From the IMG/VR virus record IMGVR_UViG_3300040801_001224, positions 248,001 to 312,000 of that record: DNA of 64,000 bases; one strand, written 5' to 3'. The notes under the pieces were generated by a model. The model saw only the letters and a program-made list of their open reading frames with translations, did no database searches and was not told where the DNA came from. The translations under genes were made by a program, and so were the position numbers. Of this stretch, positions 3,341-53,916 are shown piece after piece (positions within the stretch are counted from its first letter, which is position 1; each line of letters opens with the position of its first letter).

Positions 3341-4369
3341 ATGAGTAACACATATTTAATAGTAGACGTCCATAATTTGTTTCACAGATCCAAGCATTCG
3401 ACACGTGGTGATGTTGATACTAAAATTGGCATGGCATTTCATATCATGTTCATGTCATTACGTAAGATGTGGAAAAAGTTTGACGCGACACACATTATTT
3501 TCGCTAACGAAGGCAAGAGTTGGCGTTACACTGAAAGTCCAGAGTACAAACTAAATCGTAAGGTGGATCGTGCCGCAAAGACTGAGTTAGAGCAAGAAGA
3601 AGACACAATTATGTTTGAAGCTCTAGACGATTTAATTAATTTCCTGGACACAAAGACAAACGCATCTGTAGTACGTTGCCCTACAGCAGAAGCAGATGAT
3701 GTTATCGCGGTATGGACACAAGCACACCCGGATGACAACCACGTTATCATTAGTAGTGACTCAGACTTTGTCCAATTACTTGCTGATAACGTTAGTATTT
3801 ATGATGGTGTTAACGGACGTCTACTAAAGAAAGATGGCGTTTACAATGACAAGGACAGCAAACTAGAATTTACAATTAAGAGTGATAGCAAGATTAAAGT
3901 TGGTAAAACTAATCCAAATTTTGTCCCTGAACGTCCTGATTGGTATGAGTTCTCACTGTTCATTAAGTGTATACGTGGTGATAAGTCAGATAACGTATTT
4001 CCAGCATATCCAGGCGCAAGACTAAAAGGTACAAAGAATAAAATTGGTATAACAGAAGCATATGAAGACCGCAAAGAGAAAGGCTGGAACTTTAATAATT
4101 TCATGCTACAGAAATGGGTCGATCACAACGGTAATGAAATTCGTGTTAAAGACAAGTTTGAGCAGAACCGAAAGCTAATTGACTTAACGCTACAGCCAGA
4201 CAACGTTAAAGTAGATATTGCTGAAAGTATTGTAGAAAGCACTACAAAGCCGGTAGTGGGCCAAGTGGGTATTCACTTCTTAAAGTTTTGTTCACGTTGG
4301 AATCTAGTGAAGCTTTCCGAGTATCCGGATGACTTTGCTAATATGCTTAATGCCAAGTATGTCGATTAA
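3341..4369 (+). CDS. rnh: T4 RNase H-like 5'-3' exonuclease (FEN-like PIN fold)
   Basis: LIVDVHNLFHR, YKLNR, EADDVIA, ISSDSDFVQL, GDKSDNV motifs. Confidence 0.9.
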   Translation: MSNTYLIVDVHNLFHRSKHSTRGDVDTKIGMAFHIMFMSLRKMWKKFDATHIIFANEGKSWRYTESPEYKLNRKVDRAAKTELEQEEDTIMFEALDDLINFLDTKTNASVVRCPTAEADDVIAVWTQAHPDDNHVIISSDSDFVQLLADNVSIYDGVNGRLLKKDGVYNDKDSKLEFTIKSDSKIKVGKTNPNFVPERPDWYEFSLFIKCIRGDKSDNVFPAYPGARLKGTKNKIGITEAYEDRKEKGWNFNNFMLQKWVDHNGNEIRVKDKFEQNRKLIDLTLQPDNVKVDIAESIVESTTKPVVGQVGIHFLKFCSRWNLVKLSEYPDDFANMLNAKYVD

Positions 4370-4616
4370 GCTCAATACTTTCTACGATGACTTAACCGAA
4401 CAAGATGTAGCTTATCTGTTATTAAGATATGATACGTGTAAATACACAATTGATTATCACGACAGACTGGAAACGCTACTAATAAATTTTGATGAACCTA
4501 AGTCGTGGCCCGCACTATTTAGGTTTGATGATAACGGGCGCATCAGGTATGGTGTGTTTGAATCTAAAAAAGATATACAAATGGGATTTATCGAACGCAA
4601 TACAAGGAGAGATTAA
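4359..4616 (+). CDS. hypothetical protein
   Basis: ORF 4329..4616; ATG 4359 overlaps rnh end. Confidence 0.55.
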   Translation: MSIKLNTFYDDLTEQDVAYLLLRYDTCKYTIDYHDRLETLLINFDEPKSWPALFRFDDNGRIRYGVFESKKDIQMGFIERNTRRD

Positions 4617-5101
4617 TGTTTCGATTGAAGGAAGTAACTGACAATTCATGGTTGGTACAGGGTGACGATAGCAGTTACCTAGGTTTATTGTCTGAGTACA
4701 ACGACCAGTTAACGCTAATCATCCAGGATGCTGATCGCAATAGAGCTACGTTTGCTAGTCGCGAAGAAGCAGAACAGATGTTAGGTGAAGGTATTTTTGA
4801 TAATACCATCACAGTTCAAGAGCGCAACAAGGAAAGTTATGTGAACGGTTATCCGGTAAATTATGGCGAACCTCACCAGATTGATTCCGGTGATACAGAC
4901 TTGCCACTATACACTAAGACACCAACAAGTAAGGTGCCTTATTGTGCTGGACATTACATTATACATTTCCCTAAGAGCCCACTCACAGCATATTGCCCTA
5001 AACTAGCAACATTAGAAGAGCATGGTTTTGACGGCCCTTTTAAGACTGAGATGGAAATGAAGACATTCTTACGCCAATTAAAAATGAACTATCCAAATTA
5101 A
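4616..5101 (+). CDS. hypothetical protein
   Basis: ORF track; AGGAG SD. Confidence 0.7.
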   Translation: MFRLKEVTDNSWLVQGDDSSYLGLLSEYNDQLTLIIQDADRNRATFASREEAEQMLGEGIFDNTITVQERNKESYVNGYPVNYGEPHQIDSGDTDLPLYTKTPTSKVPYCAGHYIIHFPKSPLTAYCPKLATLEEHGFDGPFKTEMEMKTFLRQLKMNYPN

Positions 5102-5816: not shown

Positions 5817-7694
5817 ATGATTAAAACAGACATAAATGAGGCAGTTAACCTGCACTGTTTATTGAGTGTTACAGATGAGAATGGCATTATTATTGACGCC
5901 AATCGGAAGTTCTGCGAAACCACAGGTTACTCTCTCGAAGAAATCAAAGGCCAGAAGCATTCGATGTTTAAATCGAACCAGCATCCCAAAGCGTTTTACG
6001 AGGATTTATGGAAAACAATATCCACCGGCAACATATGGCAATCTGAGATATGTGACCTAAATAAAGCTGGTGAAGAATGGTGGGCTGAGACTACAATCCT
6101 CCCTCAAATGGATGAGCATGGCAAAATATATCAATATGTGTCAGTTAAAACTCATATAAGAAAACCAACCGCAGAATCTCCTCATCTGCCCAGAAATATC
6201 ATTCGTGATGTTTCAAATGAAATAGTATTATTCAATGAAGATACACTTAGAATCGTTGACGTTAATGCTAAGGTTTGCTGTAACACTGGTTACGTTGAAG
6301 ATGGTGAATTTGAAAAGTTAACACTCCTGGATATCCTTAGCGAGTATGACAACGATGGCATACAAGAAATAGTTTCAAAAGCAAAGTATAGAAATGAAAC
6401 AGTGGAATTTGAGACTGTCGTAGAAAGGAAAGACGGTACATATTATGATGCTCTTGTGAGAGTTCAAAACTACCAAAAAGAAGATAACAATACGTTTGTC
6501 GCTTCTATTAAAGACCTAACACAACAAAAAAAGCATGAAATGGAAATAAGCCAAGCTAAGAAGATGGAAGTACTCAGTGAGGTAACAAGCAACATTGCTC
6601 ATGACTTCAACAATCTTCTTGCCACTATACTTGGTTTTAATAAGCTAATTGAGATGCAGAGTATCAGTGGTGAGTTTGACCGCAATAAAATATTAAATTA
6701 TTCAAAGAATATTGTTGACGCAGGAAATAAATCAAAAGAACTAGTTGCTAGTATGGTTGAGTTCTCTAAGAAAGCTGACAGAGACATGACCAAATACAAA
6801 CTATACGAACTGTCTGGACTAGTTGAAGAATCACTTGATCTGTTGAGTGCTGTACTGCCTAGCGATATCACGCTATCAAAGAAACTTGATTCTAACTTAC
6901 ACGTAAAAACCAATAACATCAAATTACACCAGATTATCATGAATCTATGCTTGAACGCCAAAGACGCTATTGATCAAACTGATGGCACAATTGAAGTTGG
7001 CGTTAGAATATATACTGATGAAATAGACAAATGTACCTCATGTAGAGAAAACTTACAGGGATCTTACATTGAGTTATATGTCAAAGACAACGGCAAGGGG
7101 ATAAGTCAAGAAAAACTAAAAGATATATTCAAGCCATATTATACAACAAAGTCTGATTTGAATGGTACTGGGACAGGCCTTTCTACTGTACATAAAATTA
7201 TGCACGAACATGAAGGACACATAGTAGTTAAGTCTATTCCTCAGGTAGGAAGTGTGTTCAGCATGTTATTCCCGTTTGTCGAACAGCCAGCACATGAAAA
7301 TGATGAAGAGACTGAATATAAACCAATGCCAGGCGGTGGTCGACAACTTCTCATTGTTGATGATCAACCAGCATTAGGACTATTCCTGCAAGATCTCACA
7401 AAGGAACATGGTTATGAGCCAATATATTTTCAGGACGGCAACCAAGCCTATGATTACTATGTTGGCCACCATAACGAAATTTCAGCAGTTATTACTGACA
7501 TGGGTATGCCAGGTATGAATGGCGTCGAGCTCGTAAAGAAAATATTTGAAATTACATCAGACCCGAAGGTTATTGTATGTTCAGGCAATGTTGCTCAGAT
7601 TGACTTCAATGAATTGCCTAAAACCTGTGCTGTGCTACCAAAGCCCATTAACATCAGTGACTTCTTCCAGGAACTTGACAGTTTAATCTATTGA
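5817..7694 (+). CDS. cytoplasmic hybrid sensor histidine kinase (PAS-PAS-HisKA-HATPase-REC)
   Basis: PAS NRKFCETTGYSLEEIKG; H-box AHDFNNLL; N-box QIIMNLCLNAKDA; DNGKGI; YTTK..GTGTGL; receiver IVDDQ, TDMGMPGMNG, PKP. Confidence 0.95.
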   Translation: MIKTDINEAVNLHCLLSVTDENGIIIDANRKFCETTGYSLEEIKGQKHSMFKSNQHPKAFYEDLWKTISTGNIWQSEICDLNKAGEEWWAETTILPQMDEHGKIYQYVSVKTHIRKPTAESPHLPRNIIRDVSNEIVLFNEDTLRIVDVNAKVCCNTGYVEDGEFEKLTLLDILSEYDNDGIQEIVSKAKYRNETVEFETVVERKDGTYYDALVRVQNYQKEDNNTFVASIKDLTQQKKHEMEISQAKKMEVLSEVTSNIAHDFNNLLATILGFNKLIEMQSISGEFDRNKILNYSKNIVDAGNKSKELVASMVEFSKKADRDMTKYKLYELSGLVEESLDLLSAVLPSDITLSKKLDSNLHVKTNNIKLHQIIMNLCLNAKDAIDQTDGTIEVGVRIYTDEIDKCTSCRENLQGSYIELYVKDNGKGISQEKLKDIFKPYYTTKSDLNGTGTGLSTVHKIMHEHEGHIVVKSIPQVGSVFSMLFPFVEQPAHENDEETEYKPMPGGGRQLLIVDDQPALGLFLQDLTKEHGYEPIYFQDGNQAYDYYVGHHNEISAVITDMGMPGMNGVELVKKIFEITSDPKVIVCSGNVAQIDFNELPKTCAVLPKPINISDFFQELDSLIY

Positions 7695-11771: not shown

Positions 11772-11800
11772 TTGACAGGACCACTTTTTTAGCATATAAT
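11772..11800 (+). promoter_or_regulatory. sigma70-type early promoter with CCAC box
   Basis: TTGACA-17-TATAAT. Confidence 0.8.
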
Positions 11801-12147: not shown

Positions 12148-12372
12148 ATGTCTACAGAAAAGTAGTAAAAATCCAGAGACCTAGGTCTGTAAGCTAGGGA
12201 GCATTAGAAGAGACATCTTCTATTCGGGGAGGGCAACAAGACTCTTGTGTCGGACACCAATCCTGCTATATTTTACATATTATTCTAAAATAGTGATAAA
12301 TAGGAATAAGCGTAAGATAAGGTGCTACCAACACCTTACCCTACTAAACATAACAATAATTGGAGTATTATT

Positions 12373-13242
12373 ATGCCTACTACTATTTATCAAGACTGGA
12401 ATCCACGTCACTATTATATTATAAGAAATAAAACCTCTGGAAAACTATACATTGGCCAAACTATAAGAATAATTTTAGAAGAATATTTAGGATCTGGAGA
12501 ATATTGGAAATCACACTGTGAACGCAATGGTGGCTATAATAAAGAAAATATTGAGGTATTATACAACAAATACTACGAAGATAAAAATAAAGCACAGCAG
12601 TTTTTAGACGAAGTATATGAGAAAGAAGGAAGATATTGGGATAAAGGAAACACTAAATGGGCAAATTTGATGCCTGAAACTACATCTGCATATGACCCAT
12701 TGGTTATGTCTGAGATACAAAAAAGAAGAATTGAAAATGGAACACATCATTTATTGAAAGAAAATCGCAAGGTTCTACATACTTCGACTGAATTAACTCC
12801 CGAGCAAGCAAGAAGTATGGCGTCAAAAAGAATTGAAGGCGGAACACATAACATTGGATGCGGGAAAGTATATTGTGTGACCAGAACTGGAGAAATTGTC
12901 AATATTGATGTAGATGTATACGAAGCACAGCAAGGAGAAATGTGCGATTGGGATTATGTTAGGCCTAACTCTAATGAGGGTAGAAACCGTACTGGAAAGG
13001 TAAAACCAGAAATATCTGATGAAACAAAGAACAAATTAAGGCACGTTCAAATGAAACAAATTGAGTCAGGTAACCACAACTTAAAAGGTAGTGTCACTTG
13101 CCGCAATAAAAAGGGAAAAGTAGTCCAGGTTCCAAAAGAAATATATTATGCCCAAGTTGGGACATATTGTGATAGAGAATATGTCACAATAGGATCTATT
13201 GAGGGTAGAAGAAGAGCAGGAAAACCTCCGCGCTATCAATAA
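12373..13242 (+). mobile_element. free-standing GIY-YIG (Seg-like) homing endonuclease gene
   Basis: YYIIRNKTSGKLYIGQT, YLGSG, WANL; repeated C-terminal G.HN/HL modules. Confidence 0.85.
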
Positions 13243-13343
13243 AAACTCGTGTAGTGATCCTGAAGAGTTGAATGCTGCCTGGTTAGTCAGCCAGGAATAA
13301 GGAGTAGTTGTAAAACTAAATTTAACTTTTTTATTTTATAAAG

Positions 13344-13536
13344 AGTTTATTTAAATATACTAAGTAGCAAACATCGTTTATATTAAAACCTTGGGTAAGA
13401 TGTTGGACATTAGTTTAATTGGCAGAACGCTTGCTGGCTGGATAAGACCTTAGGAGTCATGACCTATCGTTGCTCCGATAGCTGGCTTGAAGTGGGGTTC
13501 GAGTCCCCGTGCCCACTTAGTATATTTAAATAAACT
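13344..13536 (+). ncRNA. tRNA-like RNA with central insertion, enclosed by a 22-bp perfect inverted repeat
   Basis: 13344-13365 is the exact reverse complement of 13515-13536; D arm GTTTAATTGGCAGAAC and T arm GGGGTTCGAGTCCCC inside. Confidence 0.65.
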
Positions 13537-13542
13537 TTTAAT

Positions 13543-13621
13543 GGCGGCTATAGCTTAACAGGTTTAAAGCCCCTCTCTGTGAAAGAGGAAGATGTCGGGT
13601 CGGATCCGACTAGTCGCCCCA
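13543..13621 (+). tRNA. tRNA-His(GTG)
   Basis: G-1, C73, CCTCT-CTGTGAA-AGAGG, CCA; atypical T loop GTCGGAT. Confidence 0.9.
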
Positions 13622-13627
13622 AACAAC

Positions 13628-13703
13628 GGTAATGTAGCTCAGTGGTAGTAGCACATGATTCATACTCATGCGGTCGTTGGTTCAAATCCAACCATTACCA
13701 CCA
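13628..13703 (+). tRNA. tRNA with CAT anticodon (probably elongator Met)
   Basis: cloverleaf, CATGA-TTCATAC-TCATG, CCA. Confidence 0.9.
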
Positions 13704-13710
13704 AATTTAT

Positions 13711-13783
13711 ACTCTGTTGGAGAAACCGGTTATCTCGTCAGACTTTCAATCTGGAATTACGGGTTCGAGCCCCGTACAGAGTG
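13711..13783 (+). tRNA. tRNA-Glu(TTC), no encoded CCA
   Basis: ACTCTGT/ACAGAGT, TCAGA-CTTTCAA-TCTGG. Confidence 0.9.
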
Positions 13784-13794
13784 CAAACTATTAC

Positions 13795-13823
13795 TTGACA
13801 TTACCACTTTTTAATAGTATAAT
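13795..13823 (+). promoter_or_regulatory. sigma70-type early promoter with CCAC box
   Basis: TTGACA-17-TATAAT. Confidence 0.85.
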
Positions 13824-13842
13824 GTCAATATTAAGAAGTAAG

Positions 13843-14003
13843 TGTGTTTACAGGGTGTGAAGGCATGGGAAACGACATGCCGACAAATTCTCGAATGTCA
13901 GAGATAGGCACTGGTGTTTGAGAATGGATAAAGCCTCACCGCCTAAGAGCCATGAGCTCTATTGAGGTTGCTGGTTAGATTCCAGCCGCACCCTGTAAAC
14001 ACA
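13843..14003 (+). ncRNA. structured RNA with 15-bp closing stem and T-arm-like hairpin
   Basis: 13843-13857 pairs perfectly with 13989-14003; GGCATG/CATGCC; GCTGG-TTAGATT-CCAGC; own promoter. Confidence 0.7.
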
Positions 14004-14216
14004 TTAAGATAATGGTCTAAGCTGACCGTCGCGACAACCGATATGCTAAGTAACTGATTTAGCGGTTAGTGAAACACATAGAGGACAATGCTTCAAGGAG
14101 GATTTCCACTGCCTTGTAAAACAAAACGGTGGAGCCAAATTCAATGGGACCTCCCTGGTGATATATTACGCAAACGTCATAGTTTGTTAGCGCAACCATA
14201 GGCCCGCCAAATTTAA

Positions 14217-14293
14217 GGGGATGTAGCATAGTTGGTTAATGCGCCGGCCTGTCACGTCGGAGACCGCGAGTTCAAGTCTCGTCATTCCCGCCA
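14217..14293 (+). tRNA. tRNA-Asp(GTC)
   Basis: cloverleaf, CCGGC-CTGTCAC-GTCGG, CCA. Confidence 0.95.
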
Positions 14294-14300
14294 ATTTTAA

Positions 14301-14391
14301 GGAAGGTACCGCTAAGTGGCTGGCAACCTGGTTTGAACCCAGGGGCGTTGATTGAGAGTCGGCGGGGGTTCGATTCCTCTACCTTCCTCCA
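14301..14391 (+). tRNA. tRNA-Ser(TGA)
   Basis: CCTGG-TTTGAAC-CCAGG, long variable arm, CCA. Confidence 0.92.
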
Positions 14392-14559
14392 AACCGGTAA
14401 CCGTTAGTATCTAGACTATGTGAGGCACCACAGACGTGGCGAACGGTTAGCATAGTTGACCAATAGGTGGTGGAGAATGCCACTGGGACGGTTTAATGCT
14501 GTCGCAAGACCGCTATAGGGGAGCAACGATACTGAGAGTGCGAACCCCACCAATTTTAT

Positions 14560-14650
14560 AGTAGGTTGCCAGAGTTGGTCTATTGGCGCGGACTGCTAAT
14601 CCGTTGGGTTCTAACGAGCCACGTGGGTTCGAATCCCACACCTACTGCCA
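14560..14650 (+). tRNA. tRNA-Ser(GCT)
   Basis: GCGGA-CTGCTAA-TCCGT, long variable arm, GCCA. Confidence 0.92.
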
Positions 14651-14656
14651 AATAAT

Positions 14657-14743
14657 GTATGTGCGTCAGAGTTGGAGAGCTGAAGCGGACTGTAAACCCG
14701 TTGCCAAAGTGCTGAATAGGTTCGATTCCTATCACATACACCA
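14657..14743 (+). tRNA. tRNA-Tyr(GTA)
   Basis: GCGGA-CTGTAAA-CCCGT, long variable arm, CCA. Confidence 0.92.
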
Positions 14744-14820
14744 AATTTCGTTTACGTAGGCTTTCGATATAAGCCCGGGGGGAAGCATGAAACCCCCTCA
14801 AGAACATGCTTATCTTTAAT

Positions 14821-14898
14821 GCGTCTATAGTGTTCAACGGCTCAGCACGTTAGGCTTCCACCCTGAAAGTTTCGGTTCGAATCCGAATAGACGCTCCA
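14821..14898 (+). tRNA. tRNA-Gly(TCC)
   Basis: GCGTCTA/TAGACGC, CTTCCAC loop, TCCA. Confidence 0.92.
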
Positions 14899-14983
14899 AT
14901 TTTTCTTGCCGATGTGGTGTACAACACATCATTAAATAATGCCATACACGTAAAGTCACTGTGGGGGCAAGAACATTTTATAT

Positions 14984-15058
14984 GGGTCACGGTCTGGGTA
15001 ACCGGGTTGGTCTCCAAAACCGACTGTCTGCCAATTTCGATTATTGGGTGGCCCGCCA
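14984..15058 (+). tRNA. tRNA-Trp(CCA), degenerate D and T arms
   Basis: GGGTCAC/GTGGCCC, TTGGT-CTCCAAA-ACCGA, GCCA. Confidence 0.7.
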
Positions 15059-15143
15059 ATTTTAATGAGAGGAAACAAAGGATGAAACCTGGTAAGATCT
15101 AGGCGGACAACATACAGTCCGCCATATAAATTAAATATATGAC

Positions 15144-15220
15144 GGACTCATAGCTCAATTTGGTAGAGCCCCGGTCTTTTAAATCGGTTGTTCCAGGTTC
15201 GAGGCCTGGTGGGTCCACCA
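15144..15220 (+). tRNA. tRNA-Lys(TTT)
   Basis: CCGGT-CTTTTAA-ATCGG, CCA. Confidence 0.93.
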
Positions 15221-15336
15221 ATTTTTATCTTCGCAGACCTGTAACCATATTCTGCCTCCGCCGTCGACGAAAACAGGATGGGCTGTCGGCGCAAGGTTTG
15301 TAGTTATCCTGACCCAAAACTACATCCATTTTCTGT

Positions 15337-15419
15337 CGCAGGCGAGTGGAACGGATATATAAACCATACCGGGCTCATAACCCGTGTGATACTGGGTTCG
15401 ACTCCCAGGTCTGCTACCA
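15337..15419 (+). tRNA. initiator tRNA-fMet(CAT)
   Basis: unpaired C1, GGG/CCC anticodon stem, enlarged D loop. Confidence 0.85.
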
Positions 15420-15421
15420 AT

Positions 15422-15497
15422 GGAGAGTTAGCTTTGTAGGTCAAAGCGTCCGGTTGAAGCCCGGAAGAACCTGGTTCGAATCCTGGACTCTCCACCA
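15422..15497 (+). tRNA. tRNA-Phe(GAA)
   Basis: TCCGG-TTGAAGC-CCGGA, CCA. Confidence 0.9.
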
Positions 15498-15516
15498 AAT
15501 TTAGATAAATAGTGTT

Positions 15517-15993
15517 ATGCGATTAGATGAGATACTAAAAGAAGAAACACAGATACAATTCGGATCAGCATTTATGAATCCAGTGACTAAAGATAAGACG
15601 AAATTATTTTTAGACAGCGAATTGTATATAGACCAGGAAGGCAAAGAATTCAAAAGTTGGTGGAGCAATCCAGAACAACATTTTAAGAATGGCGGTGTTT
15701 TTGCTGTGGCATATGCAGATGGAGAACCAGTAGGCGTTGGTGTCATAAAACTACCTGACGAAGTGCTTAGTGGTGAAGTAGATGGCAAGGAAATCGCGTA
15801 TATAGGAGTAGTCGGATTCTTAGTAAAAGAAGAATTTAGAAACTATGGGTTAGCAACACGGTTGGCTTATCTACTCGAAAACAAAATACTTAGTGTATAC
15901 AATCTTCCAGACAATACTACGCCAATTGTAGTTTGTACTGGCAAAGCCTGTGAAGTAGCACAGAATTTCAAAAGAATACAAATCGAAAAATAA
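15517..15993 (+). CDS. GNAT-family acetyltransferase-like protein with short MRLDEILKE leader
   Basis: FLVKEEFRNYGLATRL resembles GNAT motif A; GATAAATA at 15504. Confidence 0.7.
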   Translation: MRLDEILKEETQIQFGSAFMNPVTKDKTKLFLDSELYIDQEGKEFKSWWSNPEQHFKNGGVFAVAYADGEPVGVGVIKLPDEVLSGEVDGKEIAYIGVVGFLVKEEFRNYGLATRLAYLLENKILSVYNLPDNTTPIVVCTGKACEVAQNFKRIQIEK

Positions 15994-16051
15994 CAATATA
16001 TTGACAACGCCACTTACTTGTGTTATTATAATAATATAAGGAGAAGATGTT

Positions 16052-16249
16052 ATGATATATGAAAGCTCAAAAGACTACGGTACCGGTGAAGTCACCCTAC
16101 TGTTTGATAATCGAACACCATCCTATACGGAAATATCAGAGCATGTTGAGGAGAACTATTCAATGACGTCCTTCTCATACATGATTGAGGAACCTACCGA
16201 ATATAATGGTCTGGTAAATCCTGGTATAGTGAGGGTAATTCAACAATGA
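16052..16249 (+). CDS. hypothetical protein
   Basis: ORF track; promoter TTGACA at 16001; AAGGAG SD. Confidence 0.65.
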   Translation: MIYESSKDYGTGEVTLLFDNRTPSYTEISEHVEENYSMTSFSYMIEEPTEYNGLVNPGIVRVIQQ

Positions 16250-16428
16250 AATTCCAAGTTACTGTAATAGAAAGCGAACGTGGCTGGGGTCAAAAGATTG
16301 ACGAAGTCCGTGAGTTCAACAGTGCTGACAAAGCATGGAAATTTTACGATGAAGTAAACAGCAGAAATACAGAACGTACTGCTCCAGACATATACTGGCA
16401 AGCACAGCCGCCAGTAAGAATAGAATAA
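16246..16428 (+). CDS. hypothetical protein
   Basis: ORF track; ATGA coupling. Confidence 0.65.
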   Translation: MKFQVTVIESERGWGQKIDEVREFNSADKAWKFYDEVNSRNTERTAPDIYWQAQPPVRIE

Positions 16429-16429
16429 T

Positions 16430-16505
16430 AGTCCCGTAGCTCAGTCAGGAGAGCGCAGAGCTGATAACTCTGAGGTCGCAGGAGCAAAGCCTGCCGGGAC
16501 TACCA
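16430..16505 (+). tRNA. tRNA-Ile(GAT), atypical T loop AGCAAAG
   Basis: CAGAG-CTGATAA-CTCTG, CCA. Confidence 0.85.
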
Positions 16506-16512
16506 ATTTAAC

Positions 16513-16587
16513 GCCGAGTGGTCTGGATGTTTAGGTGCTGGTCTGCAAAACCATGTTAACAGGGTTAGATTCCCTGACTCGGCTCCA
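16513..16587 (+). tRNA. tRNA-Cys(GCA)
   Basis: GCCGAGT/ACTCGGC, CTGCAAA loop, TCCA. Confidence 0.88.
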
Positions 16588-16588
16588 A

Positions 16589-16665
16589 GCCCCTATAGCT
16601 TAACTGGTTAAAGCGTCGAGCTCATAACTCGGGGAGTCCTTGTTCGAATCAAGGTGGGGGCACCA
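16589..16665 (+). tRNA. tRNA with CAT anticodon (probably Ile2)
   Basis: GCCCCTA acceptor resembles Ile2; CTCATAA loop. Confidence 0.88.
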
Positions 16666-16672
16666 ATTTTTT

Positions 16673-16830
16673 TAACTTGTGCCGGAACTGGTATACGGGG
16701 GTGTGGTCTCAGTCAATATGAATAGGGTTGTGAATAAAGAATAGCAACTCTTGTACCCAGGGCGAAAACCACCAGGCGGTAAGCAGTACAACGCAAAACG
16801 CCATTGTAGGTTCAAATCCTACCAAGTTAA
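16673..16830 (+). tRNA. class II (Leu/Ser-type) tRNA gene with about 53-nt insertion in the anticodon loop
   Basis: TAACTTG/CAAGTTA acceptor, Leu-type D arm, GTAGG-TTCAAAT-CCTAC, GTGGT/ACCAC stem enclosing 60 nt. Confidence 0.65.
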
Positions 16831-16902
16831 TTATGCGCGGTCCACGTTCCTCGCTGTAACTTTTGTTACATAGGTTGTGATTATGGCGGCGCACCATTTT
16901 AT

Positions 16903-16976
16903 AGGGTCATAGTGTAATGGTAACACCCGAGATTTTGATTCTCGTATTCCAGATTCGAGTTCTGGTGACCCTGCCA
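16903..16976 (+). tRNA. tRNA-Gln(TTG)
   Basis: CGAGA-TTTTGAT-TCTCG, GCCA. Confidence 0.93.
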
Positions 16977-17005
16977 ATTTTACGCAGTTCGTGGTAAATA
17001 CAGTT

Positions 17006-17798: not shown

Positions 17799-17827
17799 TT
17801 GACAAACCCATTATACTCTAGTATAAT
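17799..17827 (+). promoter_or_regulatory. sigma70-type promoter of the giant ncRNA
   Basis: TTGACA-17-TATAAT. Confidence 0.85.
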
Positions 17828-17833
17828 ACAATT

Positions 17834-18697
17834 CAAAGTTAAGCAATGTCGCATATCGACGATAAGGCACTGAAAGGTGTCGAAGGATGGGAATCCAACA
17901 GCCCATCACCAGCAATGGTAGAGGTATGCAAGCCGAGACTCCAATAAGATATCAGTCATGCTGGTATTAGGAGACAAAGGCTCTCTTAGGGAAGTACCCC
18001 CAGGCCAACGGTGAGGGGCGAAAGTAACAGGTGAAGCTGACTACCTAGGGTTCAAAGAGCTAAGTTGACAGAGTCAAAGGGTAGTGTTACTTGTACAAGA
18101 CTTAGCGGTCGAGTGCTGTGACGCAGTCTTATAGGTAGTGTCCACAACCAGGGCATAATATCTAGAAAGACAACTGAAAAGTAACCTTAGCGGGTGAAAC
18201 AGTATTCGGTGTAGCGTATTCTGTACTCCAAAAGAGTATGGACCGTTTTAGAGGCGCACATCGAGGTTGGTTTAAGTTAGCTCAATTGGTTAGAGCAACG
18301 GCATTTTGGAGCCGTGGGTTCTTGGTTCAATTCCAAGACTTACATACAAAAACGCAAAGACGCCTCTACGTAGTAGTAACGATTAAATGACTTAATTGTC
18401 CGTACACTCCGGTGAATACGGAATAGGTTGAACTCGCAAGGTGACGCCTAGTTTGTTTGAAGTCGCACATTGGATTTAGCGATCCTTAACTGCTCGCAAG
18501 GCAGATGGAACACTGACAGCAGAAACGACTACTATAAAAGTGTAAACGCCAGCACTATAAAATGGGCAGTCATGCTTGATACCGAAAGACGAGACCACGG
18601 TCTGTCCAAGGGGAGTAGGGCTTAACTAGCAAGGTCGCACTTGTTAGGTACGAGTTCCGAATGATCAAGTGTAATACGTCCTAACTCTCAGACGTAT
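17834..18697 (+). ncRNA. probable GOLLD giant ncRNA with embedded tRNA-like domain
   Basis: about 860 nt with no ORF over 60 aa, GC-richer, many hairpins, two CTCGCAAGG motifs, 3' GTGTAAT..CTAACTCTCAG hairpin, tRNA-cluster context; family assignment from memory. Confidence 0.7.
18271..18344 (+). tRNA. tRNA-like domain (Gln TTG-like, 8-nt loop, no CCA) inside the giant RNA
   Basis: GCTCAATTGGTTAGAGC D arm, ACGGC/GCCGT, CTTGG-TTCAATT-CCAAG. Confidence 0.7.
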
Positions 18698-18783
18698 CTA
18701 ATTTATCATTTAGGCAAAAGTATTCATAAAGTTTTCAGTGTTAAATTTAAGATAGATAAATAACACTGTACTTAATAAGTAAT

Positions 18784-18886: not shown

Positions 18887-18962
18887 GCCACTATAGCTCA
18901 GCTGGTAGAGCGCCACACTTGTAATGTGGATGTCCCGTGTTCGATTCATGGTGGTGGCACCA
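18887..18962 (+). tRNA. tRNA-Thr(TGT)
   Basis: CCACA-CTTGTAA-TGTGG, CCA. Confidence 0.95.
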
Positions 18963-19090
18963 AACATAATGGTCCTGTTCCTATAATAGCAGGTATTGGT
19001 GGTAGAAATGTGTAAACGGTTTAAGGGCACCACCCTTCCTTAAACTCCGGACGATACGTAACCGGCCATAAATTTAAGGAGAATATTAAG

Positions 19091-19167: not shown

Positions 19168-19217
19168 GTCCGACTCAATAAAACTCCACCAAAATTCCTA
19201 TATAGATAAATACTAAT

Positions 19218-20048
19218 ATGATAGGAAAATGCTCATGTGTTATATGTAAAAAACAGTACTCTGGAAAGGGGATACACACCCATGCCGACAGAACTCATGG
19301 TGACGAAGAGACAAAAGCCAAATATAGTTCAGGATATAATGGCAGATACAATGATCCAGAACATATGAAAAACTTAAAAAAGTCATTAAAAAAGTTTTAC
19401 GACAAAGAGTTAGGCCCTAAAAAAACATATAATGTTTCTTGCCATAAGTGTGGTAAAGATTTCGATGTAACCGAAAGAGAAAATCAATTTCCGTCTAAAG
19501 AAAAATATTTCTGTTCTGCAACTTGTAGAAATACTAGGTCGCATACAGAAGCCACAAAACAGAAAATAAAAAAATCACTCAGAAAATATAATGGGCCTGA
19601 AAAAATATATGAAAAGACATGCCCTTGGTGTAGTAAAATTCACACTACTAAGGAAAAAAATAAAAAATTCTGCTCGCGAGATTGTGCCACAAAACATAAA
19701 TCGGCAGAAGCCAGGAAACATCGTTCGGCATATAAGAACTACAGGGCAGATTGCGAATTTAGGTTTAATCTAAAAGATTATCCAGAAGAATTTAATTTCG
19801 CACTTATTGAAGAGCATGGATGGTATAGTGCGGCCAATAGAGGAAATAATCTATATGGTGTGAGCCGAGATCACATAGTAAGTGTGAAATACGGCTTTGA
19901 GAATAATATAGATCCAGCTATTATATCTCATCCAGCAAATTGCCAGTTAATGATACATTCGGACAATGTATCAAAATATACGAATAACGATTTAACAATC
20001 GACCAGCTTTTAGAGAAGATCGAAATCTGGAATAATAAATACATTTAA
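19218..20048 (+). mobile_element. HNH-type homing endonuclease gene with Zn-finger modules
   Basis: CxxC repeats, FCSxxC, SRDHIVSV..HPANCQLMIHSDNVSK. Confidence 0.85.
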
Positions 20049-22328: not shown

Positions 22329-22751
22329 ATGCAGATATTAACATTCATAGAAGACAGGGAAGCGTATGCCATTGACATAATGCAGGTCAAAGAAATTATA
22401 CGTTTAGATGAAAGTGCTGTGCGTCCTGTGCCTGGTGAAGGACCAGAGCATTATGGTTTAATGTATTTGCGTGAGACACCAATCAGTGTATTTAATGCCA
22501 ACATTGTGTTAGGATTAGCCGACACTGAAATAACAGATGAAACCCGTATTATTATATTGGAAGACGACGGACAGTTATATGGATTTTCATGTGACTCAAT
22601 ACGTGAAATATATCGGGTAGATGAAGGGGATATACAGAACCCTGTGGAACGTAGTAGATTTATACGTGGGGTTATATACTGTAAGGAACGTGATGAAACA
22701 GTCGTAATACTGGATCACGAAAACTTATTTGAATCCTTTTCAGAAAGATAA
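22329..22751 (+). CDS. cheW: chemotaxis coupling protein CheW
   Basis: YAIDIMQVKEII, GLMYLRETPISVF, RIIILE, GFSCDSIREI, FIRGVI, VVILDHENL. Confidence 0.9.
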   Translation: MQILTFIEDREAYAIDIMQVKEIIRLDESAVRPVPGEGPEHYGLMYLRETPISVFNANIVLGLADTEITDETRIIILEDDGQLYGFSCDSIREIYRVDEGDIQNPVERSRFIRGVIYCKERDETVVILDHENLFESFSER

Positions 22752-23599: not shown

Positions 23600-23932
23600 A
23601 TGAAATAGACTAAACCAACATTACGTTTGTGGAAATGGGGAGAAGATAGATTTTCCCATCTTGGATACAAAATATTCACAGTGTTTTACTGTAAGTACTT
23701 TGACTTTTATATATTTAAATATCAACCAGGTGCCTATATACCAAAACACAAAGATCCAGGAAAATGGCATTACAGATTAAATTTTATATTTGGTGGTGAT
23801 GGCAAGTTTATATGTAAAGGTGCGTTAATAAACACCAAGTACATAACACTGTTTAGAGCGGACAAGTATTACCATAAGACAACACCAACTTCCACGACAC
23901 GTTATGTTGTAAGTTTTGGTCTAAAGTTTTGA
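23600..23932 (+). CDS. 2OG-Fe(II) oxygenase-like protein with in-frame TAG at codon 3 from the best start (or TTG start at 23627)
   Basis: IPKHKDPG (HxD), HYRLNF, distal H and RYVVSFG; AAGGA-9nt-ATG AAA TAG in frame. Confidence 0.65.
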
Positions 23933-23999
23933 GCCATTGAGGCCAGCCTAAGGATTCTAAACCCAGAAGGCGCCGGTTCAAGTCCGGCATGGCTCACCA
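23931..23999 (+). tRNA. aberrant 69-nt tRNA-like gene, possible CTA anticodon
   Basis: GAGCCAT/ATGGCTC-ACCA and GCCGG-TTCAAGT-CCGGC perfect; tiny D arm; weak anticodon stem around TTCTAAA. Confidence 0.5.
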
Positions 24000-26398: not shown

Positions 26399-26433
26399 TT
26401 GTTTGTATTGAAGTCTAAGTGATAAATAAAAGT

Positions 26434-27186
26434 ATGGACAAACCATATCACTACGTTTATCGCATCACAAATCTCCTGGAGTCAAAACATTATTATGGCT
26501 CCAGGAGTTCGATAAATAAACCACATGAAGATCTTGGAGTTGTGTATTTTTCGTCAAGTAGTGACGAGCAGTTCAAGAAGCTTCAGGTGTCACAGCCAGA
26601 AATATTTAAATATAAGGTAATAAAATCATTTAGTAGCAGAGAGGATGCGATTTTATTTGAAATAAAGTTACATAAAAGATTCAATGTCAGTAGTGAAGAC
26701 AAGTTCTATAACAAAGCAATTCAGTTGACTTCTGGTTTCAGTAACTACGGAAATAAAGAGATAGGAGACAAAATTTCCGACAAAGCCATCGGCCGTTTTA
26801 AGGGGCAAACTTATGAAGAAATTTACGGTGAAAACAAAGCAACAGAACTAAGGAAATTGCGTTCTGAAAACATGAAAAGTCATTTGAAACAAAATCCAGG
26901 AATCAGAGACGGTGAAAAAAATCCAAATTATGGAAAAAAATGGAATGATGAAAAACGAAAAAAAATGTCTAAAAGACAACAGGGTGAAAACCACACTCAA
27001 TATGGTTACTTTTGGGTTACAGATGGCAAAATAAATAAAAAATTACCGCCGAACTCTGAAATACCCAACGGCTTCACAAAGGGAAGAACTTGGCCTATTA
27101 CACAATGTCCTCACTGTGGTTACGAAGGCCGTGGACCAAATATGAAAAGAATACACTTTGATAGATGTGAAGACAAAAATAAATAA
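26434..27186 (+). mobile_element. GIY-YIG-type homing endonuclease gene with NUMOD3-like repeats
   Basis: YHYVYRITN..KHYYGSR, YFSSS, FYNKA, GEKNPNYGKK. Confidence 0.85.
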
Positions 27187-27284: not shown

Positions 27285-27359
27285 AGTCCGGTAGCTCAGA
27301 GGCAGAGCACCTCGTTTACACCGAGGGGGTCGGGATCTCGGAATTCCCCCGGACTACCA
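27285..27359 (+). tRNA. tRNA-Val(TAC), atypical T loop
   Basis: CCTCG-TTTACAC-CGAGG, CCA; T loop CTCGGAA. Confidence 0.88.
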
Positions 27360-29561: not shown

Positions 29562-29718
29562 ATTCAACACTGATTGGGGCATTGACAAAGATCAGGCATT
29601 CATCCTCCTTGAAGACTATCAGGATGACATTAAAAGCATAAGAGAATGCTCTGGTAATCTATATGTTAGGTTCAAGGATAACGAAACCAAATTGGCATTC
29701 CTATTAGCACACCTCTAA
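29521..29718 (+). CDS. small protein of the FxxxxDxxxFxL family
   Basis: VRFKDNETKLAFLL. Confidence 0.65.
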   Translation: MKNMEISSTGYEVKFNTDWGIDKDQAFILLEDYQDDIKSIRECSGNLYVRFKDNETKLAFLLAHL

Positions 29719-30561: not shown

Positions 30562-30626
30562 CATAGTTCACATTAAATTACACGGTATTATGGATAAATA
30601 CGGGAAAGGTAACCAGGGAATTGGCA

Positions 30627-33600: not shown

Positions 33601-34013
33601 AAATAGCAGAAAAGAAACTACGTAAGTCTATGGGATGGCGTATTGGATTGAATGCTGTTGGTGAAAAAGCATTGTCCGAAAGTATAACGTTAGGCGGCAC
33701 AGTGTTCTTCACAACGTTCTCACCAGACCCACAGTTAGTGAGTGTTTGTGTGCCATTGCCAGGACAGGGTCGCTTATATGCTGTTCGGGTTTCCGATGCA
33801 TCTGCAACCAAAGACTTCAACAATGACGGTAACTTGGATAGAGAGTCATTACTGGGTAGCTTAATACCAGATGCACCCAGCTTACACTTTGGTGATGATG
33901 GGTTTATCCGTTTATTATTCCCGAGTGGCGGTGGTTTATCAGACACCAACCCTGTTAACAGTGGGGAGAGTTTGCCTGGCTTATATAGCATATACTGGTG
34001 GAGAGCTGAATGA
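30627..34013 (+). CDS. pilY1: type IV pilus adhesin PilY1/PilC (vWA-like plus beta-propeller)
   Basis: signal peptide then DDTEIY; IIFDNSSSM; MTDGQP; LADMLHSKP; GTNGGFFH; GQTWSEP; DRLYFGDTGGNLWRVD; GSGDRTNP; FTTFSP. Confidence 0.93.
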   Translation: MNKLKLLLLTAFLTLSLGADDTEIYQSNVNNNSGEKPKVLIIFDNSSSMVTNNVTQQAVAYNPSIDYNGSFRDDRIYWSTTGTPSGNNYFNAGRNRCAESYGPLAAEGFFQTRAQRWRSSGRFGGSWRNLSRRVTTPVHVDCEADVIAGNVGNGSGQSDGLPSPTGPYGGTGNVNWGGNSYTFYTGNYLNWFFNASTVESTRLAVAQDVIRDLVSANTGIDFGLMIFNNNSDSRWDGGRIVNSIVEGDDGTQRQSILNNIGLINPKTGSPSTFTPLCETTYEAYRYMSGQSVVFANEIRLGEDTIPKDPKAESPLGVYDSPATDCAFTYIILMTDGQPTRDESANQFIRDLTGKDCLTYGNTTSCLPIIAEYMANTDLDNDTTNGNQYAITYTIGFTTDQELLQDTARLGKGQYFTANDTASLTAAFQGAITAILSTNSAFTSPAVAVDTFSRTESRDDIFFAMFEPSDTTNWPGNIKRLRLADSSGDKILVDVNGDPALDPSTGRIRDTAQTYWSPNIDGNQVTEGGVGELLARRDPDTREIYTNTGTGGSLEDFDDVAFDVGAFGVTDINQVYDEFNVTNAIQLTDLILWSAGYDVDDENNNGDRTDARPWILADMLHSKPLAINYGATGGVYDKDNPNIKLVVGTNGGFFHMFSTDTGVEDWAFFPKELSSMLLERRAERVTADNVYGIDASPVVYILDKELDGTIDASDGDRVYVYFGLRRGGSILYALDITDPGSPEFLFKIDRNTTGFSLLGQTWSEPLVTTISGHDGPVLIFGAGYDTNKDATGVGTPDSVGLGVYVVDAITGQLLRSVTPAATTNTNLQAPIQHSVPSNIAGIDSNGGGNTDRLYFGDTGGNLWRVDMLGDLDEQKWRVTKLADVNDGTTAGDRRFFNEPDVVRTKSTLCLDDECTQVANVNYDAVLIGSGDRTNPNATDVANEFYMFRDFQTGAYSTDIADCDDDTIVEYRCDLPITPDDLYDATTDIVGTDEIAEKKLRKSMGWRIGLNAVGEKALSESITLGGTVFFTTFSPDPQLVSVCVPLPGQGRLYAVRVSDASATKDFNNDGNLDRESLLGSLIPDAPSLHFGDDGFIRLLFPSGGGLSDTNPVNSGESLPGLYSIYWWRAE

Positions 34014-53867: not shown

Positions 53868-53916
53868 AGTCCTAAGAATAGACTTGGGCAATCAACCAAT
53901 AAAGGGAGACTTTATT

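Follow-up and report, generated by a model that had tools for sequence, protein, structure and literature searches.

The window, a 64,000-nt stretch of DNA, was taken from the complete 328-kb genome of an uncultured jumbo phage with terminal repeats, recovered from a microbial mat. This phage is distantly related to Pseudomonas phage PA5oct, with whose large terminase its own shares 62.5% identity. The window carries a tRNA array; ARAGORN called 26 tRNAs, all on one strand, and neighbouring true tRNAs of the array are separated by gaps of 6–7 nt. A number of further units, designated here by u and a number, are found in and close to the array. The features considered are listed in the order of their position.

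u11, 12174–12259, plus strand: structured RNA of about 86 nt with an ACA-CCA end
u7, 13341–13539, plus strand: tRNA-like core inside a 25-bp A/U-rich closing stem; no CCA
tRNA array, 13.4 to 28.2 kb of the window
Promoter, 13795–13823, plus strand: sigma-70-type, perfect TTGACA-17-TATAAT, 12/12 consensus matches
u0, 13841–14005, plus strand: RNA with four arms, closed by a 19-bp stem and including a T-arm-like hairpin, GCUGG-UUAGAUU-CCAGC; no CCA
u1, 14014–14137, plus strand: conserved RNA of 124 nt, not a tRNA, with a G-CCA end
u2, 14146–14209, plus strand: rod hairpin of 64 nt in a tRNA slot, closed by GGG(A)CCU/AGGCCC and followed by G-CCA
u3, 14392–14552, plus strand: unit spanning about 160 nt, flanked by two tRNA-Ser genes, with a GGGG...CCCC-A-CCA end; 5' end uncertain
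u10, 14984–15058, plus strand: degenerate cloverleaf with a Trp anticodon (CCA), a T stem rich in A/T and a G-CCA end
u6, 15233–15419, plus strand: tRNA-like RNA with a 7-bp acceptor stem, CAU anticodon arm, T arm and A-CCA
u5, 16672–16830, plus strand: 8-bp acceptor-like closing stem, D-like hairpin and canonical T arm GUAGG-UUCAAAU-CCUAC; no encoded CCA
u4, 16835–16896, plus strand: rod hairpin of 62 nt in the slot before tRNA-Gln, closed by GCGC-G-GUC/GGC-G-GCGC and followed by A-CCA
u13, 18971–19068, plus strand: conserved structured RNA ending in GG-CCA, then TAAATTT

The promoter at 13795–13823 heads a transcription unit comprising u0, u1, u2, tRNA-Asp, tRNA-Ser, u3, tRNA-Ser and tRNA-Tyr, followed by further genes. 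Additional sigma-70-type promoters lie at 11772, 11865 and 17799, and an 11/12 match at 16001; promoters matching the consensus at 12/12 positions number four. The content of the array turns over rapidly. In the relative fragment L099, a GNAT gene directly follows tRNA-Lys, neither u6 nor tRNA-Phe being present between them, and the order Ile-Gly-Gln in the fragment L110 corresponds to Ile-Cys-Met-u5-u4-Gln in the window.

An earlier note on this DNA had described u1, u2, u3, u4 and u11 as CCA-ended units, and the NCCA ends of all five were found at the positions it gave. The 3' end of u1 is GGUGGAG-CCA, followed by AATTCAAT; u2 reads GGGACCU...AGGCCC-G-CCA, then AATTTAAG; u3 ends in CCCC-A-CCA, then ATTTTAT; and u4 reads GCGC...GCGC-A-CCA, then TTTTATAG. 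The tRNA-type spacer reported behind most of them follows four of the five, the exception being u11, where GGACA-CCA runs into ATCCTG, unlike the usual spacer. The plus strand of the 328-kb genome contains the pattern CCAA[AT]TT 61 times, including 14 occurrences within 13380–17000 (0.52 expected). Among the 1,398 bases of this interval that are neither tRNA nor CDS, three were counted against 0.20 expected (Poisson P about 0.001). This punctuation by CCA and spacer is real and not random, and the tRNAs of PA5oct show the same CCA-AUUUU grammar. The rod hairpins are spaced closely: u2 begins 8 nt past the preceding unit and ends 7 nt before the next tRNA, the corresponding distances for u4 being 4 and 6 nt.

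That these five units are not cloverleaf tRNAs was borne out. ARAGORN made no tRNA call on any of them and Rfam RF00005 gave no match at its gathering score, nor at E ≤ 5 across 11.7–29 kb; canonical tRNA identity was therefore rejected for all five. In a comparison with 94 tRNAs, u1, u2 and u4 displayed no similarity (z -0.39, 0.52 and 0.05, all below 1). The termini of u2 pair over 6 bp with one bulged A, followed by G-CCA, and those of u4 over 4+3 bp flanking a G-G mismatch, followed by A-CCA. The predicted folds of u1 and u3 contain no pairing between the 5' and 3' termini, hence their 5' ends would not be set by RNase P. The proposal that stems and CCA persisted while the arms were replaced thus fits u2 and u4 only, acceptor pairing between the termini being absent elsewhere in the set. 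None of the stems has the alanine determinant G3:U70, position 3:70 reading G-C in u2 and u4 and, in the u1 3' hairpin, C-G.

The unit u1 consists of a 5' hairpin, a central multi-stem domain, the single-stranded, invariant segment CUUCAAGGAGGAU and a 3' hairpin, a local 7-bp stem (UCCACUG/CGGUGGA) behind which the NCCA sits. A counterpart at 2280–2405 of L110 is 92.9% identical, and the final 51 nt are invariant. By comparison, tRNAs with the same anticodon are only 54–72% identical between the window phage and L110, the sole shared neighbouring gene has 72.7% DNA identity, and of 10 L110 proteins only one has any homologue in the window genome. Every difference between the two u1 copies lies in a loop or keeps a pair, including a complementary G/C co-insertion. 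A covariance model (R3) scored these copies at 152 and 159 bits and gave no other matches. In the window, u1 is flanked by u0 and u2; in L110 its neighbours are the stop codon of an ORF and tRNA-Met. The sequence was kept though both neighbours differ, which argues for a self-contained unit. Instead of long-term selection, however, the high identity could stem from a module recently passed horizontally between mosaic phages.

Two further units have counterparts in relatives. In the window, u11 lies behind a small ORF and its terminator, with a GIY-YIG homing endonuclease gene downstream, and its fold as a single sequence is not significant (z -0.14). A counterpart is located at 3945–4048 on the minus strand of the fragment L115, behind the homologous ORF and terminator. 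RNAalifold alignment of the two predicted 17 pairs, seven of them compensatory, with both sides changed and the pair kept; ACCAAU is conserved. The second unit, u13, had been outside the list of the earlier note. It shows 85–87% identity in L110 and L115, with three compensatory pairs across the three phages, and in all three it lies directly 5' of tRNA-Ala, while the upstream neighbour varies between tRNA-Thr, an intron-bearing tRNA-Thr and tRNA-Ile. Both the window copy of u13 and that of L115 (GGU-CCA-AAUU) carry the terminal CCA, whereas the L110 copy lacks it (GGU-AAG-AAUUU). Taken across u1, u11 and u13, the differences between phages mostly keep the predicted structures, a comparison that covers two or three sequences per unit, with structures predicted from those same sequences. 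These three units look like working RNAs rather than dead tRNA genes. By such comparison they are putative selected RNAs, and the set of units as a whole is mixed.

The two rod hairpins, u2 and u4, were analyzed in the same way. The apical loop of u2 measures 6 nt and its minimum free energy (MFE) is -17.4 kcal/mol (z -1.32); for u4 the values are 4 nt and -22.7 kcal/mol (z -2.43), and 76% of the ensemble adopts the MFE structure. No homologue of u2 was found in IMG/VR. A pattern search of IMG/VR for u4 returned 32 matches, all of them chance occurrences in high-GC coding DNA. Orthologues of u2, u3 and u4, whose fold z-scores are modest, were found in none of the relative fragments, and in L110 the slot just upstream of tRNA-Gln is occupied not by u4 but by tRNA-Gly(TCC), which shows no similarity to it. 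L115 contains two rod hairpins of its own, ending in UCCA and ACCA (z -3.79 and -3.27), which are analogous to u2 and u4 but non-homologous, and a 206-nt unit with a 7-bp closing stem followed by G-CCA-AUUUAUG. The two hairpins u2 and u4 probably belong to the same class as the conserved units.

Several units are tRNA-like. The predicted fold of u0, which directly follows the promoter, has an MFE of -75.2 kcal/mol (z -8.15), and none of 200 shuffled sequences folded as well. The core of u7 comprises a canonical T arm, GGGGUUCGAGUCCCC, and a hairpin resembling a D arm; the fold z of the unit is -4.39, and blastn detected an inverted repeat between 13350–13365 and 13515–13530. The stretch from u11 to tRNA-His contains the endonuclease gene and u7 in the window and a short hairpin alone in L115. 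In u6 the predicted fold places a rod of about 125 nt in the position of the D arm, and u5 contains about 100 nt of inserted structure (fold z -1.08).

The evidence differs for u3 and u10. In u3, a 4-bp GGGG/CCCC hairpin alone precedes the CCA, and the unit gave no fold signal (z -0.39). Its 3' end aligns marginally with tRNA-Ser genes over their T arm and lacks the 3' strand of the acceptor (z 2.2–2.4). In view of the missing fold signal and this marginal likeness, decay is plausible for u3, which may be a remnant of tRNA-Ser. The MFE structure of u10 is a cloverleaf, but ARAGORN did not call it and its sole Rfam match was tRNA-Sec (26.2 bits, E 0.18); u10 probably represents a tRNA-Trp gene, weak or in decay.

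Phage T4 offers the closest comparison. Its RNA C and RNA D are real RNAs without a known role (PMC3014915, PMC9697503). T4 RNA D (species 2 RNA, rnaD) is encoded within the tRNA cluster, directly after tRNA-Arg, and does not form a cloverleaf. Its layout is that of u1: a small 5' hairpin, a long hairpin domain and the 3' end. This end reads GGCGCA-CCA, then AAUUAU; T4 RNA D and u4 are identical over the final 9 nt (GGCGCACCA). T4 RNA D and the window units are alike in being non-tRNA genes in a tRNA cluster that abut a tRNA and share its 3' punctuation, even though they come from different phage families, Straboviridae and a PA5oct-like jumbo phage, respectively. A covariance model (R1) was derived from five T4-type RNA D genes, whose conserved core is a 5' hairpin, CCGG-GUCGCUA-CCGG, and a 3' GAAACGGCGCAC. 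With filters off, R1 did not match u1–u4 at E ≤ 10, and membership of the RNA D family was rejected for them; its best match in the window (14.4 bits) lies across tRNA genes. The CCA is not encoded in four of the five T4-type RNA D genes. Together with its absence from one of three u13 copies, this indicates that an encoded CCA is not essential to this kind of RNA.

T4 RNA C (species 1 RNA, rnaC), also within the tRNA cluster, has a shape derived from tRNA: it combines a closing stem with an anticodon-like hairpin and a canonical T arm, and a long rod occupies the position of the D arm. One annotated homologue carries the label tRNA-Met. The plan of T4 RNA C is matched exactly by u6, with u5 and u0 as variants; A-CCA and a CAU anticodon loop of 7 nt are encoded in u6 but not in T4 RNA C. 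The RNA C model (R2) gave no match to u1–u4 and found its best window match in u6 (16.6 bits, E about 0.007, a rough value), the alignment spanning the anticodon-like arm, the T arm and the closing stem. However, R2 scores u6 about as it does ordinary tRNAs (tRNA-Gly, 13.2 bits), so that the match reflects shared tRNA-like parts and homology is not demonstrated. Bacterial Y RNAs of the YrlA type resemble u7 and u0 in combining a long stem formed by both ends with tRNA-like arms, and YrlA of M. smegmatis is cut by RNase P and receives a CCA (PMC4201824). YrlA membership was rejected, since no Ro/TROVE gene (PF05731) was found in the complete genome and the Ro-binding motif GNCGAA (G.CGAA) does not occur in u0, u7, u1, u2 or u4; u0 and u7 had no Rfam match.

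On this evidence, we put the probability at roughly 55% that the units are small stable non-coding RNA genes in a jumbo phage tRNA array, of the same kind as T4 RNA C and RNA D. The units would be transcribed from the strong sigma-70-type promoters in polycistronic precursors shared with tRNAs. A tRNA maturation endonuclease would then cut the A/U-rich spacer behind the CCA, an exonuclease would remove the remainder as far as the protected NCCA end, and RNase P would cut on the 5' side of any helix that precedes NCCA. The minimal feature set of bacterial RNase P is a helix, a single-stranded RCCA and a U at -1, and u2, u4 and the 3' hairpin of u1 present this arrangement. The contact of RNase P with RCCA has been discussed (PMC12710915). 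Nucleases and the CCA-repair enzyme would take the 3' ends for those of tRNAs, allowing the RNAs to persist. We infer these processing steps, the stability of the products and any function in trans; engagement of proteins that recognise the tRNA acceptor end is our guess at that function.

The units might instead be decayed tRNA genes or junk spacers, functionless in themselves, in which CCA and A/U-rich spacer were kept solely for the release of neighbouring tRNAs. We consider this unlikely, although u3, lodged between two tRNA-Ser genes with its weak T-arm alignment, the visibly degenerate u10, the absence of orthologues of u2 and u4 and the turnover seen in the L099 and L110 gene orders would all agree with it. 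Conservation speaks against decay: u1 exceeds every tRNA of the same anticodon, and u11 and u13 carry compensatory changes. Nor do u1, u2 and u4 retain residual tRNA similarity, their closing helices are well formed, and in L115 NCCA-tailed rod hairpins with strong fold z-scores recur independently. In the relatives, an intact tRNA orthologue was recognisable for none of the units. The earlier view that they are not decay products is backed by comparison with relatives for u1 and u11. It is distinctly unlikely that the units act in cis, as processing or leader elements that order or time the cleavage or expression of the adjacent tRNA within the precursor. Such a role would suit the fixed place of u13 immediately 5' of tRNA-Ala despite differing upstream neighbours, the position of u0 behind the promoter, and the perfect or near-perfect closing duplexes of u0 and u7, which would serve as sites for double-strand-specific nucleases. 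It is at odds with u1, which kept its sequence next to different neighbours, and with T4 RNA C and RNA D, which build up as stable RNAs (PMC9697503).

A further reading, which we regard as very unlikely, takes the units as mimics of the acceptor end, either minihelices charged by an aminoacyl-tRNA synthetase or decoys that titrate host enzymes by which the acceptor stem or 3' end of tRNA is attacked or modified, for example tRNA-directed defence toxins. Phage tRNA arrays are generally linked to translation and counter-defence, and the units sit in such an array. The helix, single-stranded G/A-CCA and U at -1 of u2 and u4 would fit, as would the u1 3' hairpin, invariant between phages with its 7-bp stem and G-CCA. 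However, no stem has the G3:U70 determinant, the CCA is dispensable in u13 and T4-type RNA D, and genes for a CCA-adding enzyme, RtcB or a Ro partner, which would suggest a dedicated pathway, are absent from the complete phage genome. Likewise, apical loops of 4 nt in u4 and 6 nt in u2 exclude decoding by these hairpins. Known minihelices are laboratory model substrates in which a T loop caps 12 bp of coaxially stacked helix, whereas the window units are natural genes with helices of 16–20 bp containing bulges and internal loops. If there is a decoy set, it would comprise the u1 3' hairpin, u2, u4 and the L115 analogues as abundant look-alikes of tRNA ends, charged or soaking up host enzymes by which the 3' end of tRNA is attacked or blocked, a prospect to which we likewise give little credence. 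Were it true, translation would be protected during infection and the class of T4 RNA C and RNA D would gain a function.

For about fifty years, RNA C and RNA D have stood in the T4 tRNA cluster without a known role (PMC3014915). Taking the units as small stable RNA genes of that kind, a jumbo-phage lineage from a family unrelated to T4 has a much richer set, with at least three conserved units and several that are hairpin- or tRNA-shaped. This suggests that large tRNA arrays of phages generally include "passenger" RNAs, which use the processing pathway of the tRNAs. With its invariant, exposed segment containing AAGGAGG and its invariant CCA-tailed hairpin, u1 is a concrete molecule to test. 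In annotation, such stretches should not be dismissed as spacers or pseudogenes.

The source virus record, of which the window covers bases 248,001-312,000, is a complete genome of 328,096 bp with direct terminal repeats, assembled from a microbial-mat metagenome. PHROG profiles match a portal protein, a large terminase, a tail sheath and a RIIA homologue, and the nearest cultured match of the large terminase is that of the Pseudomonas jumbo phage PA5oct (Arenbergviridae), at 62.5% identity. ARAGORN detected 26 tRNAs from 13.4 to 28.2 kb, every one of them on the + strand, to which Rfam adds a tRNA-Tyr (14657-14740) and further tRNAs at 23931-23996 and 27285-27356. The array is broken up by two GIY-YIG homing endonuclease genes, one GNAT gene and other small ORFs.

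An earlier note had named five RNAs within and near this array that end in CCA without forming a cloverleaf (u1, u2, u3, u4 and u11). All five 3' ends are indeed present, and in four cases the A/T-rich spacer that is typical of tRNAs comes next. None was recognised by any tRNA finder or model applied; these units are not tRNAs. CCA-ended non-tRNA units are a real, non-random feature of this region. The whole genome has 61 copies of the motif CCAA[AT]TT on its + strand, 14 of which fall in 13380-17000 against 0.52 expected; the 1,398 bases of this interval that are neither tRNA nor coding sequence hold 3, against 0.20 expected (P ~0.001). The five units, together with six further unusual units of the array and the promoters, are listed below.

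Promoters and unusual units of the tRNA array (window positions; units on the + strand; z, fold z-score)
11772, 11865, 13795 and 17799: perfect TTGACA-17-TATAAT promoters, each heading a transcription unit
16001: 11/12-match promoter, heading a transcription unit
ends at 12259: u11, not within the tight array, preceded by a small ORF with terminator; single-sequence fold unremarkable (z -0.14)
13341-13539: u7, predicted tRNA-like core within a 25-bp stem (z -4.39)
13841-14005: u0, four predicted arms, 19-bp closing stem, T-like arm (z -8.15)
14014-14137: u1, predicted fold with 5' hairpin, central domain, single-stranded CUUCAAGGAGGAU, 3' hairpin and G-CCA
14146-14209: u2, 64-nt rod hairpin, its own ends paired as GGG(A)CCU/AGGCCC, then G-CCA (z -1.3)
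about 14392-14552: u3, only a 4-bp hairpin before CCA; fold not significant (z -0.39)
14984-15058: u10, degenerate tRNA-Trp
15233-15419: u6, complete acceptor stem, CAU anticodon arm, T arm and A-CCA, the D arm replaced by a 125-nt rod
16672-16830: u5, predicted fold with acceptor-like stem and canonical T arm, without CCA
16835-16896: u4, 62-nt rod hairpin, its own ends paired as GCGC-G-GUC/GGC-G-GCGC, then A-CCA (z -2.4)
18971-19068: u13, structured RNA of about 98 nt directly 5' of tRNA-Ala

Judged by their predicted folds, the five CCA-ended units are heterogeneous and of several kinds. The rods u2 and u4 start 8 and 4 nt past the preceding unit, immediately after a U, and stop 7 and 6 nt short of the next tRNA; by this spacing they occupy tRNA slots. 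Their apical loops of 6 and 4 nt make decoding impossible. In u1, the 3' hairpin consists of a 7-bp and a 4-bp stem with G-CCA following directly, and the 5' and 3' ends are mutually unpaired. An invariant single-stranded segment of u1 (14090-14102) holds AAGGAGG, a perfect Shine-Dalgarno-like sequence; it does not lead into a usable ORF, a UUG 12 nt downstream being succeeded at once by UAA. A putative antisense target of u1 at 29602 (13-nt perfect complement) was dropped, as chance alone would give about one. None of the units has a paralogue in the genome.

Since most array proteins are without relatives, comparators were hard to find. An exception is a 276-aa protein (19218-20048), a 70%-identical homologue of which is encoded on L110, a 6.9-kb Logan contig of a related phage (run SRR22808019). 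This is the only one of ten L110 proteins with any homologue in the window phage genome. Three RNA elements are common to both, namely a GOLLD-like RNA (74% identity), u13 and u1. Over its full length u1 is 92.9% identical between the two phages and its last 51 nt are invariant, while tRNAs with the same anticodon are merely 54-72% identical. Two paired positions differ, and both changes preserve the pair (U-A becomes U-G, and U-G becomes C-G); one inserted G and one inserted C pair with each other, and the remaining changes fall in loops. In the window u1 is flanked by u0 and u2, in L110 by the stop codon of an ORF and a tRNA-Met, so that u1 is a self-contained unit. An exact look-up of two L110 proteins, aimed at extending the contig, returned only L110 itself.

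The GOLLD-like RNA lies within 17799-18700 of the window, directly after a perfect promoter, and at 632-1516 of L110. The RF02032 matches (81.8 bits, E 3.6e-20, at window 18206-18694; 130.5 bits, E 4e-35, in L110) both stay below the gathering score of 150. Each copy encloses a tRNA: an odd one with an 8-nt anticodon loop in the window (18270-18347) and a tRNA-Lys(UUU) in L110. L110 also carries, at 4141-4450, a tRNA-Thr(UGU) with a group I intron in the anticodon loop (RF00028, 103 bits) beside an HNH-like ORF; the window tRNA-Thr (18887-18962) has no interruption.

A pattern derived from u13 located a second comparator, L115. This IMG/VR contig of 40.6 kb (JGI sample 3300002231) shares its source metagenome with the contig L013, which encodes a terminase 80% identical to that of the window phage. 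The three copies of u13 (window 18971-19068, L110 4459-4556 and L115 2664-2762 on the - strand) are 85-87% identical, with three compensatory pairs, and lie immediately 5' of tRNA-Ala in all three phages. No Rfam family matches u13, which may serve this tRNA specifically, as a leader or regulatory element. The last bases of tRNA-Ala are themselves repeated (CUCCACCA then AAA) about 25 nt beyond its 3' end (window 19168-19195), a repeat kept in L110 at 4650-4675. L115 also contains a homologue of u11, placed after a homologous small ORF and terminator, with ACCAAU conserved and seven predicted compensatory pairs. Between this homologue and tRNA-His L115 has a short hairpin only, where the window has the first GIY-YIG gene (12373-13242) and u7 (13341-13539), a block that looks like an insertion and echoes segB in the tRNA cluster of phage T4. 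The second endonuclease gene (GIY-YIG/NUMOD3) lies at 26419-27186.

L115 additionally holds NCCA-tailed units that are neither tRNAs nor homologous to those of the window: two rod hairpins, one with UCCA behind it (z -3.79) and one with ACCA (z -3.27), a unit of 206 nt with a 7-bp closing stem and G-CCA-AUUUAUG behind it, and a tRNA-like unit into which about 140 nt are inserted.

These comparative data argue against u1, u11 and u13 being dead tRNAs. No residual tRNA similarity was found in u1, u2 or u4 when aligned to 94 tRNAs of the window and its relatives (z <1). According to the earlier note, relatives carrying intact tRNAs in place of the units would indicate simple pseudogenisation; no intact tRNA homologous to a unit was encountered in them. 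The slot before tRNA-Gln holds tRNA-Gly(TCC) in L110 and u4 in the window, the two being unrelated, and the arrays differ by entire cassettes (Ile-Gly-Gln in L110 versus Ile-Cys-Met-u5-u4-Gln in the window; Lys-GNAT in L099, a further related contig, versus Lys-u6-Phe-GNAT). Decay may apply to u3, possibly a tRNA-Ser remnant: it is flanked by two tRNA-Ser genes, and its 3' end aligns to the tRNA-Ser T arm without the acceptor 3' strand (z ~2.2-2.4). A minor possibility is that the CCA and spacer after a hairpin unit are a target-site duplication left by insertion of a small palindromic element, which fits one of the L115 hairpins (hairpin B) and, loosely, u2; it does not fit u1, the left side of which lacks CCA in both phages. 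The conservation patterns favour a mixed population containing three selected structured RNAs (u1, u11 and u13). The rods u2 and u4, of which no orthologues were found, are probably members of the same class.

At the end of the T4 tRNA cluster lie the genes of two stable RNAs, annotated as rnaD (species 2) and rnaC (species 1). Both have been detected by northern blots as late RNAs (PMC9697503), and neither has a known biological role (PMC3014915). RNA D follows tRNA-Arg, is not a cloverleaf and ends in GGCGCA-CCA followed by AAUUAU; its layout is that of u1 and its end sequence that of u4. RNA C, with a closing stem, a long rod, an anticodon-like hairpin and a T arm, shares its plan with u6 and u5. 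CCA is not encoded in four of five T4-type RNA D genes, and of the three copies of u13 one lacks it as well. Covariance models were built from five phages each; the RNA D model had no match in the window, and the RNA C model scored 16.6 bits on u6, scarcely above ordinary tRNAs. The window RNAs would therefore resemble the T4 class in the way they work, homology to either T4 family not being demonstrable. A YrlA-type Y RNA was rejected as an identity for u0 and u7, since both lack the Ro-binding motif and the phage encodes no Ro; Ro/TROVE protein, CCA-adding enzyme and RtcB are all missing from the phage genome.

The units are co-oriented with the tRNAs and share with them promoters, CCA and A/U punctuation; in u2 and u4 the helix runs into RCCA and is preceded by U at -1. 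By analogy with established bacterial tRNA maturation, RNase E-type cleavage within the A/U spacer, exonucleolytic trimming back to CCA, RNase P cleavage 5' of such an RCCA-bearing helix, and CCA repair would together yield stable CCA-ended small RNAs. A double-strand-specific nuclease could in addition cut the long duplexes of u0 and u7. Our favoured guess is that the targets of the mature RNAs are proteins recognising tRNA acceptor ends. The RNA set of the window would be a new, richer instance of a known, still unexplained kind, that of T4 RNA C and RNA D. The analysis relied on no alternative genetic code, and genes for toxins or effectors played no part in it.

Megablast revealed no close relatives among public phage genomes, and distant blastn against them gave tRNA matches only. 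No usable loci in IMG/VR or JGI metagenomes were obtained with the GNAT gene, a metallopeptidase gene or a two-sequence alignment of GNAT proteins; a 133-aa protein and the GNAT protein retrieved only identical contigs of sister samples and two tiny relatives. Runs containing this stretch consist only of DNA contigs from one microbial-mat sample, identical to the window, so neither variants nor RNA ends are obtainable from them. Pattern scans for u1 gave no match in IMG/VR or JGI metagenomes, and a single match in GTDB genomes (an Elusimicrobia MAG), within GC-rich coding DNA, was dismissed as chance. The u2 pattern had no match in IMG/VR, and all 32 IMG/VR matches to the u4 pattern lie in coding sequence of 58-72% GC, unrelated to u4. 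For u2, u3 and u4 there was no orthologue in PA5oct, G003 (a 369-kb IMG/VR relative with a 62%-identical terminase), L110 or L115, nor, for u2 and u4, in the IMG/VR scans. Neither PA5oct nor G003 has a sequence homologue of any unit. Array gaps in PA5oct are short and A/T-rich only, and its four published ncRNAs, located outside the tRNA array, were set aside as not comparable. In G003 (L094-L096) and L111, jumbo phages more distantly related, whose terminase or marker protein is ~58-62% identical to that of the window phage, GC-rich structured units of 50-240 nt lie between tRNAs, several with long closing stems and T-arm-like hairpins, none CCA-ended.

The GNAT acetyltransferase gene (15517-15993) is embedded among tRNAs, and its 50%-identical relative in L099 (369-842) has tRNAs on both flanks; its substrate may be tRNA or aminoacyl-tRNA. 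Unusual proteins encoded elsewhere in the window are a PAS/histidine-kinase/receiver hybrid (5817-7694), a CheW-like protein (22329-22751), a PilY1-like protein of 1,130 aa (30621-34013) and an NAD salvage pair (52821-55413) composed of a NAMPT-type phosphoribosyltransferase and a cytidylyltransferase-NUDIX protein.
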